This document shows, one piece after another, positions 40,260-55,269 of a stretch of DNA of 64,000 bases (position 1 is its first letter; every line of letters begins with the position of its first letter). The stretch is from Euprymna scolopes. Lineage: Eukaryota. The DNA is taken from assembly GCA_053919585.1 (NCBI GenBank), contig CM132792.1. One strand, given 5' to 3'. The notes beneath the pieces were generated by a model, which was not told the origin of the DNA, did no database searches, and saw nothing but the letters and a program-made list of their open reading frames with translations. The translations under genes and the position numbers were made by a program.

Positions 40260-40705
40260 ATTTGTTTATTCATTCTTTTGTGAACTGTTATCCTCATAGT
40301 TGTTGTTGTTGTTTCACTATGTTTCAGCCAACTCCTCCTCCGGCCGTCAGGTGATTAACCGCGACTGAATAGGAATACTTAGTCTTATAACTGTATCCCC
40401 AGTAATTATTGCCTTCCATAGCTGTTTTCTCACCAACTAATCTTCTGGCCTGCTTAGGTAGGATTGAAACTGCTATCTTCAGACAGTGCTCACCTGGAAT
40501 TGTAGAGCCTCAATGTCTCTATTCAATGCGCCATGGCCCCAAAATGATTACTGAAGATACAGTTACAAGACTCTGCATTCATATCCTGTCGCAATTAATG
40601 AATTGAAGAAGGCCAAAGGATAAGTTGGCCGAAACATGGTGAAACAACATCTATGAAGATGAGGATACAAAAATAAAGCCTCATCTCAAAGGATTTCAAA
40701 AACAA
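40260..40705 (-). mobile_element. Penelope-pLTR-related SINE-like element (tRNA-like head plus hammerhead-like tail) with an inverted partial copy
   Basis: Minus strand: GGGGCCA-TGGCGCATTGA (A box, 40523-40533), GTTTCAATCC (B box, 40461-40470), CTGA..GGCC..GGCT-GAAAC (40321-40351). Plus strand 40544-40670 is an inverted copy of about 40286-40408. Confidence 0.7.
40603..40640 (+). ncRNA. Degenerate hammerhead-ribozyme-like core
   Basis: TTGAAGA-A-GGCCAA-loop-TTGGCC-GAAAC: perfect 6-bp stem II; first core C replaced by T; stems I and III not clearly resolved. Confidence 0.5.
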
Positions 40706-40905
40706 AAAATGTCATTTATAAATGCTATTATTAAGAAAAACTTAAGTCACCTATATTTTCTTCTATGAAGTAGCAACACAAGAATTCCAACTTATGTTTA
40801 TAATTGATATTTTTTAATCCTTTTATGAGTCATTTTTATTTGTATACCTTACAATTTTAATATTGTATTCCAATTCTCTTGTTCAGTTACCGATGTCAAA
40901 TGCAA

Positions 40906-52744: not shown

Positions 52745-53075
52745 TAATACTAATTTACACTACTGTTCTCATCTTGGATAATATTCTTACGTTTTGGTTA
52801 ATGTAACCTCCAACCTTCTTCAGGTACATCTTGTCGAACTCAAAATTTTTTTAATGAAATTTCAAACTAATTTTTATTTAATTCAAGGGAGTAGATTGTT
52901 CTCATTTCATCAGCCATGACCGAGTAGAAGTGTTAATTAATCTTTCATTCTTAGTATTACCGATAGTGAGGATTAAACTTTCAACCCCCAGAAAACTGTC
53001 ACTTAGAACTGATTGTTAATCAACACATTTATCTATTGCATCACATGGCTGATGGAGCAAGAACAAGCTATCCCA
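52745..53075 (-). mobile_element. Penelope-pLTR-related SINE-like element (tRNA-like head plus hammerhead-like core) with a short inverted copy
   Basis: Minus strand: TGATGCAATAG (decayed A box, 53033-53043), AGTTTAATCC (B box, 52970-52979), CTGAAGA-AGGTTGG..TTAACC-AAAACGT (52789-52823). Plus strand 53044-53074 is an inverted copy of about 52887-52917. Confidence 0.7.
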
Positions 53076-53630
53076 TTACCTGGTTATAAAATATGCTTAA
53101 GACGTTTCTGAATTTTTGAGATGAGGATTGGTTATTTGTATTATTATTCATTGGACTATTGTTCTCATCTCGAGTGCGATTTTTTTTCACAACGTTTCAG
53201 TCGATATAACCTCCTTTATTTACTTTGCGGGGTTAACGTGCTCTTGTTCCGTCAGCCATGACTGGATAGAGTAATTTGTAATTTGCAATTTGCAAATGCA
53301 TATTTCGGTCATTTACTCTGAGGATTGAACCTTCAACCTTCAGGAGAATATCACTTTTACAATTGAGTTTTCCCAGTACTCTAACCACTGAGCCACGGGT
53401 CCTTACAGACAATTCTAGTAGGAATTTTAGGAGCCTTAAATCTATTTTTTATTTCTAGTTGTAAATATCACCATTTATTACTAATTATTAATGTATATCC
53501 ACCTCTATACTTGTATATATTAATGTTTTTACTTATTACTTGTATATTATTATCTATTGTTTATAATTACTGGGTCCCATATCGTATTGAATTCTATACT
53601 AGGTCTACTTAGCAGTTGGTTATTCCCCAG

Positions 53631-54204
53631 ACAAGAGAAAACCTCCACCGAAACAACTATCCAGAGAGCATGACATCAGCTCAAAGAAATCTGGACCAAA
53701 AACAAAAGGACACCACTCAGAAACTCACCACAGTTTGTGCACCATATATGAAGGGCTTGTCTGAAAAACTTCAACGAATATGTAATCCATATGACATCAG
53801 GACAGTATTCAGGAGTGATTCAACTCTCCGGAAACAGCTTGTGAGAGTCGAGCCCCCTACAGAAAAAAATCATGACTAAGGACTGTGTATATGAAATCCC
53901 ATGTAAATGTGGAAAACTATATAGACGTGAAACGTGTCGTCCGTTGAAAGTATGGTTAGAAGAACATCGAAAAGCCGTAGTACGTGGAGAGACTGAAAAG
54001 TCAGGTATAGCTGACCATATCTGGAAAGAAAAGGGAAACCATCTACCACTATGGGACGAAGTAAAAATTATAGACAGAGAGGAACGGTGGAGAGTAAGAC
54101 GACTGAAAGAAGCAACACATATGCTGGGGAATAACCAACTGCTAAGTAGACCTAGTATAGAATTCAATATGATATGGGAACCAGTAATTATAAACAGCAG
54201 ATAA
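53631..54204 (+). pseudogene. Penelope linker plus GIY-YIG endonuclease (frameshift near 53872)
   Basis: PYMKGLSEKLQRI...IRTVF; DCVYEIPCKCGKLY..ETCRPL...EEH...KSGIADH..GNH...W.EVKII..E...RRLKEA. Confidence 0.9.
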
Positions 54205-54302
54205 TATATACAAGTAATAAGTATAGAGATAGATATACATTAATATATAGTAATAATTAGTAATAAATGGTGATATTTACAACGTACTAGAATTGTCCGC
54301 AA

Positions 54303-54395
54303 GGACCCATGGCGCAGTTGTTAGAGTACTGGGAAAAATAAATTGTAAAAGTGATATTCTCCTGAAGGTTGAAGGCTCAATCCTCAGTGTGGGCG
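54303..54395 (+). promoter_or_regulatory. tRNA-like Pol III A/B-box head inside the Penelope pLTR (mirror copy at 53320-53402, minus strand)
   Basis: GGACCCA-TGGCGCAGTTGTTAGAG...GGCTCAATCC; the mirror copy has the consensus GGACCCG-TGGCTCAGTGG-TTAGAG and GGTTCAATCC. Confidence 0.7.
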
Positions 54396-54550
54396 ATCGA
54401 AATATACATTTGCGAATTACTTAGGACCTCTATCCAGTTATGACGGGACAAGAGCATGCTACCCCAGCAAAGTAAATAAAGGGTTCCGCTCGAAATTCCA
54501 TCCAAATTCCCGTGTTCGACAGAAACATTCCCGAGTTCGACAAGATAAAC

Positions 54551-54584
54551 CTGAAGTTCGGAGGTTATATTGATCGAAACGTTG
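54551..54584 (+). ncRNA. Degenerate hammerhead-ribozyme-like core in the pLTR
   Basis: CTGAAG[deletion]TTCGGAGGTTATATTGATC-GAAACGTT. The consensus with the 52789-52823 and 53190-53214 copies is CTGAAGA-A-GGTCGG-loop-TCGACC-GAAACGTT. Confidence 0.55.
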
Positions 54585-55269
54585 TGAAAATCACACTCAA
54601 GATGAGAACAATAGTCCAATGAATAATAAAACAAAATATGCTTAAATATGATATTTTAATTTATGTAGATTTCGTATATATTATAGTCATTTCTCTATCA
54701 ATGATTATATATTCTATTGTGCCCAGTATATAGTAGTGATTTCAAAAGTTTAAAAAATAATACAATATGACTTGGGTGCTATCAGCTAAAATTGAAAGTG
54801 AAACTCGGTTATTATCATTTGAGTTATTGTCAGTTGGATAAAAAATAGCTAAAAATAACATTAACATATATATATATATATATATATATAATTCTTGGTT
54901 CGTTTGTTATCAATAAAACAATATTTCTACATTACCAATTCAATTAAAATTTTCAGACAGTTTATCCTTAGAGTCAAATGTTTTTATGTTATTAAACTAA
55001 ATTAATAATTCAAATTATAAATTAAATAAAATACTTCCGGTAGTTATTTCAATTCATGCACCACGATTTGACGACTCTAATCGATGAGTGAAAAAAAAAC
55101 ATTCTCTATTTTTAAAATTTAAATTAATTTCCCAATTTTTTAATTTAAAACAAATTGCTTGCCAGAAGGTGCATTTTAAGTTGAAACATAAGTCAAAGAA
55201 CCTTAACAAAACCATCTTTGTCGTAAAAATCACACATTTGTTTTTTAAACAGTTGTTTCTATATAAGAA

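Follow-up and report, generated by a model that had tools for sequence, protein, structure and literature searches.

A conserved tRNA-like A/B-box module beside the hammerhead of coding Penelope-like elements: a candidate RNA polymerase III promoter in a mollusc clade and a ladybird

The window analysed here is a stretch of 64,000 nucleotides from contig CM132792.1 of the Euprymna scolopes assembly GCA_053919585.1. At positions 53088-54645 it holds a dead, duplication-flanked composite insertion of an endonuclease-bearing (EN+) Penelope-like element (PLE), made of a 5'-truncated copy and a more truncated partner in inverted orientation. Both copies bear, between the stop codon of the open reading frame (ORF) and an ATG upstream of a hammerhead ribozyme, a tRNA-like module with an A box and a B box. 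Comparisons between lineages indicate that this module is an inherited, selectively conserved part of a mollusc clade of PLEs, present also in a PLE of a beetle. We favour, with modest confidence, the reading that it is an internal type-2 promoter of RNA polymerase III (Pol III). A bolder proposal, which we put forward tentatively and with some doubt, is that this is a clade of autonomous coding PLEs transcribed as whole 2.7-kb units by Pol III, kept free of terminators by selection, with subsequent processing by the hammerhead.

In the left copy of the insertion the A box reads TGGCTCAGTGG (53395-53385, minus strand) and the B box GGTTCAATCC (53331-53322, minus), within a module spanning 53315-53420 (minus) that was recognised by pattern match. 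A preliminary description of this DNA had placed both boxes at exactly these positions. The combined pattern of A box, spacer and B box was matched once in the window, versus 0.005 matches expected from Markov-1 simulations. The right copy carries the counterpart of the module at 54283-54400 (plus strand; inverted repeat, 88%), with a decayed A box at 54310-54320 and a B box at 54374-54383.

The presence of the module was followed in the lineage of the window (family A), in a sister lineage of the same genome (family B) and in other hosts. Searches of the own genome covered 5.9 Gb in 925 contigs. Among 30 loci seeded by a fragment of the reverse transcriptase (RT) alone, about 18 displayed the order ORF tail, spacer, module, mid region and hammerhead. 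Most RT-seeded copies that reach the stop codon have the module, and the exceptions resemble internal deletions or truncated loci. It is found in every unit of the family B arrays, where the stop codon is followed by an A tract of 5, 22 or 37 nt depending on the copy, then by the module with TGGCCGAGTGG and GAGTTCAATCC, the ATG and an intact hammerhead. Beyond this genome, ORFs homologous to that of family B have the module in the same place in Tara Oceans metagenomes (L068, 55% amino acid identity; L069, 61%), in other assemblies (L075, 72%; L076, 59%) and in a PLE of the ladybird Harmonia axyridis (L080, 46%). The earlier suggestion that the head is an integral part of the coding element is therefore upheld by its position after the stop codon in most RT-seeded copies reaching it, in family B, in other assemblies, in metagenomes and in a beetle, and the same recurrence in RT-seeded copies, family B and other hosts rules out a one-off insertion of a short interspersed element (SINE).

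Three further observations concern heads and units at individual loci. An unrelated tRNA-derived, SINE-like head (TGGCCAAGTGG ... AAGTTCGAATCC) lies within a family A ORF remnant at L003:1126-1173 (minus). In L068 (1-100), the opening 50 nt are the reverse complement of the 50 nt that follow, and it is the latter that lie in the tRNA-like head; this may reflect an assembly fold-back or the junction with an inverted partner at the head. Matches of Rfam microRNA models on L068 were spurious and came from this inverted contig end. In the tandem family B units at L064:2519-8029 (minus) a single stop codon interrupts a frame that is otherwise open over the full 2.75 kb of the unit, so that the module and the spacer are also in frame with the ORF there.

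Not all related PLEs have the module. It is absent from L070 (51% identity), in which only about 45 nt separate the stop codon from the hammerhead, and from L071-74, L077, L078 and L079. In a protein tree the mollusc-side bearers fell into one clade with a support of 100/100. L070 was placed inside or beside that clade, and the Harmonia element stood elsewhere, next to the module-less L077. Among 80 further PLE loci from metagenome contigs of the JGI, the pattern found no module within a PLE, and inspection of 3' regions revealed none; as many of these contigs do not include the 3' region, the absence carries little weight.

In an alignment of seven lineages, mean pairwise identity was 0.74 for the A box and 0.76 for the B box, versus 0.43 between the boxes, 0.44 upstream of them and 0.45 from the B box to the hammerhead; the hammerhead arms reached 0.82-0.89. 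Conservation across lineages is confined, in this region, to the two boxes, the surroundings of the ATG and the hammerhead ribozyme. Start-to-start spacing of the A and B boxes varied from 42 to 64 nt, inside the working range of type-2 promoters. The distances from the module to the ATG (about 40-110 nt) and from the ATG to the hammerhead (about 80-110 nt) were also variable.

No tRNA fold accompanies the boxes. ARAGORN predicted no tRNA gene in the window, in family B or in L068, L069, L075 and L076, and the best score obtained across lineages with the Rfam tRNA model was 14.2 bits, against a threshold of 29 bits. There is no acceptor-stem partner in any lineage and no anticodon stem, so the sequence does not form a tRNA cloverleaf, and no compensatory changes preserving a fold were seen. 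The lack of a fold favours a role of the module as promoter DNA over a role as RNA structure. In view of this and of the drift of the surrounding sequence, it is the pair of promoter boxes, not a fold, that has been conserved.

A hitch-hiking relic is one rival account of such a head: a tRNA-derived SINE or a tRNA pseudogene that landed in the spacer of an ancestral PLE and has had no role since, the poverty in T runs described below being an unrelated trait of the clade. The loss of the cloverleaf is as expected for a relic; the presence of the module tracks phylogeny, with one mollusc clade plus Harmonia; L070 does well without it although it sits in or next to the bearer clade; and some module-less PLEs are poor in T runs too. 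We nevertheless regard this explanation as unlikely. The boxes have stayed at 0.74-0.76 identity with about 0.44 around them, across lineages at 55-72% amino acid identity and between phyla, and their spacing has remained within promoter range. Moreover, an insert of 75 nt with no role should decay or vanish where non-coding space is minimal, as it is in L070.

A second line of evidence for a Pol III promoter comes from the coding sequence. Four or more consecutive T on the sense strand (T4+) act as a terminator for Pol III. The ORFs of the bearers B, L068, L069, L075, L076 and L080 contained 0, 0, 0, 1, 0 and 0 such runs, versus 8, 15, 6, 9 and 6 in the module-less L070, L071, L077, L078 and L079. 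Over 27.8 kb of decayed family A coding sequence, 14 were observed for 66 expected. The Harmonia element had none over about 2.9 kb of sense strand, and its flanks had one per 60-100 bp. Runs of A were not depleted in family B (25 observed versus 32 expected). The avoidance was also visible in codon choice, phenylalanine being encoded by TTC and TTT in a proportion of 89:6 in bearers and 61:74 in non-bearers. Under synonymous-codon shuffles, runs of three T numbered 13 for 38 expected in bearers, versus 97 for 110 in the others.

The same measure was applied to the 71 of the 80 metagenome PLE loci with enough coding span. Their median density was 4.7 T4+ per kb and their median ratio of observed to expected was 1.4. 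When these were joined with the five module-less ORFs (76 loci), only 5% lay at or below 0.6 T4+ per kb. The six bearers had 0-0.57 per kb and ratios of at most 0.43. The difference between bearers and others gave Mann-Whitney p values of 4e-5 for density and 1e-7 for ratio, in a comparison where the module status of many metagenome contigs is unknown. The preliminary description had seen the module as a part of a self-contained pseudo-long terminal repeat (pLTR) unit. The pairing of head and hammerhead on which this idea rested stands, and the T-run poverty of the whole coding unit, which had been missed, goes beyond it and points toward a possible Pol III transcription of the entire element.

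On one strand, at promoter spacing and in a unit nearly devoid of T4+ runs, the A and B boxes agree with what is known of type-2 promoters. If the module is such a promoter, solo 3' ends would yield, by Pol III transcription from the module, transcripts of about 300 nt comprising head, hammerhead and tail, and the PLE enzyme could copy these in trans into short copies starting at the head. In tandem arrays the module could drive transcription through whole terminator-free units, and hammerheads acting as dimers would cut the multimeric product into unit lengths. Should whole units indeed be transcribed in this way, then the tRNA-headed hammerhead SINEs and retrozymes would possibly be the promoter-plus-ribozyme end of the element running alone, a corollary that we hold with as much reserve as the proposal itself. 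To our knowledge, this would be the first Pol III-driven autonomous retrotransposon.

Two short insertions in the window had been described as SINE-like offspring of the element. They do begin at or near the head, and were found to derive from two related lineages, C and D, rather than from family A. The first (40261-40706, lineage C) is itself composite, with a minus copy at 40542-40261 that starts 2 nt before the tRNA-like head and a plus partner at 40543-40706 that consists of the hammerhead end only. The second and older one (52745-53077, minus, lineage D) starts at the A box, about 53043, and has a broken hammerhead near 52840. Beginning with the A box, its segment 52745-53043 aligned to the 3' end of a coding PLE, that of L075, and it is preceded by a 34-nt inverted fragment (53044-53077). 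The two starts, at -2 and about +6 relative to the head, differ by a few nt from the start predicted for Pol III, which fits templates made by this polymerase. With only two such copies, ordinary 5' truncation may also account for them. Two seeming groupings of 5' ends, one at the stop codon and the other 20 nt ahead of the tRNA-like head, were discarded as alignment breaks due to indels in the window copy.

A tandem, non-coding repeat of 322 bp was noticed elsewhere in the genome, at L022:2640-3246 (minus), next to a (TA)n/(CA)n tract. All its units carry a head resembling a tRNA (TAGTCAAGGGG ... GGTTCGATCC), after which comes a canonical hammerhead (CUGAUGAG, 4-bp stem, GAAA loop, CGAAAC). 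By its sequence, it is classed as an Sm-alpha-like retrozyme.

Several points weigh against transcription of these elements by Pol III. We know of no precedent for a 2.7-kb protein-coding Pol III transcript, which would moreover be uncapped. In codon-preserving shuffles the T4+ deficit was accounted for by codon usage, and only runs of three T were depleted beyond it. Some module-less PLE loci, for example L112 and L083, are poor in T runs as well, and because the bearers may represent two independent clades, molluscs and Harmonia, few independent contrasts stand behind the association. The 5' ends of longer copies are scattered through the ORF, and those of family B lie at four positions. In the solo full-length family B insertions L065 and L066 the upstream repeats end short of the module, so that these insertions would be without the proposed promoter. 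Finally, raw poly(A) reads displayed no pile-up of read starts at the head, in libraries ill-suited to Pol III products.

RNA data do indicate that family B is expressed. In six RNA runs (oligo-dT or poly(A), labelled mollusc), 65-70% of sampled words of the family B unit were present. Raw poly(A) reads over the family B ORF had a strand bias consistent with sense transcription, provided that these are dUTP-stranded libraries, and both strands were covered over the repeat region. In these reads a few inverted joints were found at 2215 and 2218, which correspond to the AACGTT site of the hammerhead; they are suggestive only. Over the hammerhead and tail of L064 (2114-2455 and 4850-5190), poly(A) reads of opposite orientation were as many as, or more than, over the ORF. 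The repeat region of the same locus also has abundant loose read ends, which suggest that a related subfamily differs by indels near the ATG and immediately before the hammerhead.

The presence of the element in poly(A) and oligo-dT RNA runs also agrees with a DNA-level role of the module other than Pol III transcription, in which the boxes would recruit TFIIIC as an 'extra-TFIIIC' type of site and so form a chromatin barrier, help a nearby Pol II promoter of the ORF or mark a landing place for nested or tandem insertion. In tandem units the module precedes the ATG by 40-110 nt, which is where a promoter of the ORF is expected, and PLEs are known to insert beside one another (Craig et al. 2021, PMC8557442; PMC6765202). 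Such a role is improbable in our view, as it leaves unexplained both the avoidance of T runs on the sense strand of the whole unit and the short copies starting at the head.

A role at the RNA level, with the tRNA-like stretch recognised as RNA by RNase P or Z so that an end is defined, bound by the RT of the element as a handle or acting as a stabiliser, is very improbable: the module does occur in every 3' end, where recognition by the RT would happen, and tRNA-like processing signals exist elsewhere, in the MALAT1 mascRNA and in gammaherpesvirus tRNA-miRNA units, but the acceptor-stem partner and the anticodon stem are missing, ARAGORN and Rfam were negative in all lineages, conservation is limited to the two promoter boxes, and the 5' ends of insertions do not match the 3' edge of the module. 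Two specific forms were considered and rejected. MALAT1-like end formation by an A tract and a tRNA-like piece conflicts with an A tract that differs among copies (5, 22 or 37 nt) and with the absence of a cloverleaf, and 5' ends of the RNase Z type, after the module, conflict with the four different positions of the family B 5' ends.

The second partner in the proposed Pol III scheme is the hammerhead. All four hammerhead-like cores of the window are broken, as the preliminary description had stated. In the left arm the half with CUGANGA was removed by a deletion of about 80 nt (copies elsewhere in the genome are longer by about 80 nt there), the right arm is without part of the core, the 52840 copy has AAAAC in place of GAAAC, and the 40352 and 40595 copies are mutated. 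Intact hammerheads occur in sister copies and in ten other lineages, and the 36-nt string that had been given as the hammerhead consensus from the window alone was matched exactly in a family A sister copy, L032.

Across 12 lineages the core of the ribozyme reads CUGANGA, or UUGANAA in its U3-A8 covariant form, and a single unpaired nucleotide precedes stem II. This stem has 5-7 bp and several covarying pairs (among its variants are GGCCG/CGGCC, GGTCGG/TCGACC, GGCAGC/GCTGCC and GGTTAA/TTAACC); the other shared parts are GAAA with CGU(U/C) after it and a helix I of 3-6 bp. It is thus classed, from its sequence, as the minimal type I hammerhead of PLEs, with predicted catalytic activity. This agrees with the statement, in the preliminary description, that the pLTRs of PLEs often contain minimal hammerheads, a published kind in which the unpaired nucleotide before stem II has also been described (Cervera & de la Pena 2014, PMC4209133). 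The hammerheads published for PLEs are poor self-cleavers in monomeric form. Rfam hammerhead models gave nothing above threshold in the window, family B, L068, L069, L075 and L076.

The U3-A8 covariant was observed in PLEs of other hosts, as UUGAGAA or UUGAAAA, at L071:352-398 and L079:2561-2606; a core covariant of this kind was noted by Cervera & de la Pena in the schistosome Cercyon element. Mollusc-side and beetle PLEs have in common a small palindrome of hairpin-like form (GGTCCTTCTCAGGACC and variants), placed immediately before the hammerhead (L068:175-200, L069:2487-2512, L076:4801-4826 and L080:3810-3835).

The start codon of the ORF is upstream of the hammerhead, and the peptide read from this ATG is conserved in families A and B and in L068, where the gene call (148-2691) starts at the equivalent ATG and the hammerhead is at about 203-238. 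The hammerhead is therefore inside the N-terminal coding sequence. The preliminary layout, correct for the head and the hammerhead, had overlooked the ATG between them and hence this coding position. Translated, the segment gives PDEGRR..RPKRC, a basic and conserved peptide that resembles a nuclear localization signal (L065:5143-5181, L068:203-238 and equivalents). Where stem II differs between families A and B (GGU/CGA versus GGC/CGG), the changes fall on third codon positions and alter no amino acid in either half of the stem, which argues for a constraint on the RNA on top of the coding constraint. In the module-less L070 (838-885), where about 45 nt lie between stop codon and hammerhead, the start of the called ORF is the AUG contained in the CUGAUGA box of the ribozyme core itself.

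The composite insertion of the window is bounded by a 13-bp exact direct repeat, AAAATATGCTTAA, at 53088-53100 and 54633-54645. This is the target-site duplication, which had been correctly reported at both edges. Its inverted arms, each some 500 bp long, occupy 53135-53630 and 54124-54635, with a piecewise complementarity of 79-95%. These arms had been noticed, and taken for two pLTRs around one ORF; they are instead the 3' ends of two 5'-truncated PLE copies joined head to head at a junction near 53630/53633. Each copy presents the same series, namely ORF tail, spacer, A/B-box module, ATG, minimal hammerhead and 3' end.

The left copy, on the minus strand and severely truncated, begins with the last 27 codons and the stop codon of the ORF (53550-53630; 95% identical to 54124-54204). 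Downstream of its module come an ATG at 53259-53257 and the 3' terminal region with the hammerhead remnant (53135-53214, delimited by BLAST to the right arm; GAAAC at 53198-53194). It then extends 34 nt beyond the end of the right copy (53101-53134), forming a tail at one end only. The sequence matching this tail continues into the N-terminus of the ORF in the fuller copy L032. A one-sided tail was likewise found in family B, where ends fall at reference positions 497 and 532-534.

In the right copy, on the plus strand, the series is preceded by about 570 nt of ORF (53633-54204; 70% nucleotide identity to the family B ORF tail) ending in a 110-aa frame at 53872-54204. The AT-rich spacer after the stop codon (54205-54282) is about 35 nt shorter than in sister copies. 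After the module comes a start-codon remnant upstream of the hammerhead (54401-54550, ATG at 54440-54442), recognised by alignment with L032, family B and L068, and then the mutated minimal hammerhead (54551-54583) and a short 3' end without tail, which reaches 54632. Such inverted 5'-truncated partners, with a tail of 30-40 bp at one end, have been described for PLE insertions (Craig et al. 2021, PMC8557442). The inverted or tandem partner, the one-sided tail and the target duplication characterise both the window insertion and those of family B.

The 110-aa frame had no Pfam match of its own. It aligned at E=4e-15 with residues 527-630 of the homologue P0044, of which residues 527-598 pass the Pfam GIY-YIG model, so that the GIY-YIG identity proposed for this ORF in the preliminary description holds by transitive homology. 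The window copy keeps only the C-terminal part of the protein, and the PLE-type RT was identified at the level of the family, by a match of the family B ORF to RVT_1 at 1.1e-10. This ORF had 730 homologues, and among those listed RVT_1, DUF8422 and HTH_animal were in common.

Both families are abundant. The first look at the genome gave at least 3,652 candidates for the family A 3' region and 15,030 for the RT fragment. Family B, about 72% identical to family A in protein, is young, with open frames of up to 921 aa, and is arranged in tandem and inverted arrays with a period of 2.75 kb. Its 3' 121 nt gave at least 1,153 first-look candidates, and all 40 that were scored were 100% identical. 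Over the non-coding stretch, BLAST between families A and B detected no similarity except in the hammerhead. Candidate counts in four adjacent segments along family B were 56, 420, 103 and 1153, a non-monotonic series that was unusable as a profile of copy number. Ceph-SINEs were considered as the same element and rejected, as they are RTE-related.

A coding PLE with a conserved Pol III-type promoter beside its hammerhead would bear on three open questions: how PLEs and hammerhead elements are transcribed, what the hammerhead is for, and where Sm-alpha-type SINEs and animal retrozymes come from. It offers one testable answer to all three, in which the short tRNA-headed repeats would be the 3' module of the autonomous element itself and the hammerhead would process terminator-free Pol III read-through. 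As for the T-run signature, it can serve as an easy test, based on sequence, for every catalogued PLE. Transcription of whole units by Pol III, if true, would alter the textbook split between SINEs, made by Pol III, and autonomous retroelements, made by Pol II. Telomerase is the closest relative of the PLE RT, and some telomerase RNAs are made by Pol III; whole-unit transcription would echo these Pol III-made RNA partners.

No paper on a tRNA head within a coding PLE, or on a conserved promoter motif in these elements, was found in the PLE and retrozyme literature (Repbase and Dfam were not covered), in line with the preliminary description, which had been aware of none. EN+ PLEs with minimal hammerheads in their pLTRs are well known (Cervera & de la Pena 2014, PMC4209133; Lunse et al. 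2017; Craig et al. 2021, PMC8557442). The present elements are like them in the ORF, with its RT and C-terminal GIY-YIG, the partial tandems, the inverted 5'-truncated partner, the 30-40 bp tail at one end, the variable length of the target duplication, and the minimal type I hammerhead, in which one nucleotide before stem II is unpaired, helix I is short and a true helix III is missing. They differ in the conserved A/B-box module between stop and ATG, in the position of the hammerhead within the coding sequence and in a sense strand almost free of T runs.

A close parallel for the pairing of promoter and ribozyme is found in the schistosome Sm-alpha and Sj-alpha repeats (Ferbeyre et al. 1998; Laha et al. 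2000; PMC6765202), where a tRNA-type Pol III promoter is followed by a hammerhead on the same strand, and where the proposed logic is also that of multimeric Pol III transcripts cut to monomers (PMC6765202). Sm-alpha, however, consists of short tandem units that encode no protein, and its hammerhead is canonical, helix III included, whereas here the same pairing is found in a coding element of 2.7 kb per unit with a minimal hammerhead. The animal non-LTR retrozymes (Cervera & de la Pena 2020; de la Pena et al. 2020, PMC7761336; bioRxiv 10.64898/2026.07.22.740005, Li, Clavereau & Pollet 2026) are likewise hammerhead repeats, thought to depend on PLEs and related to PLE pLTRs, and tandem tRNA-headed units of this sort, such as the L022 repeat, exist in this genome. 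Retrozymes have no ORF, and the papers on them name no conserved promoter motif, whereas here the candidate promoter is borne by the coding partner.

The PLE hammerheads, the promoter-plus-hammerhead design of Sm-alpha and the derivation of retrozymes from PLE repeats are thus already known. What is new is that the tRNA-headed hammerhead arrangement is tied to coding PLEs and extends to other hosts, together with the T-run signature. A last comparison is with the pairs formed by tRNA-derived SINEs and long interspersed elements, or LINEs (the Okada/Ohshima model; Kojima 2018, PMC5786205), in which the partners have a 3' tail in common and the short copies similarly combine a tRNA-like head with the 3' end of an autonomous element. 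In those pairs the autonomous LINE partner has no head, whereas here the partner is a PLE that has one; as the autonomous element already contains the head, no recombination is needed to make a 'SINE'.

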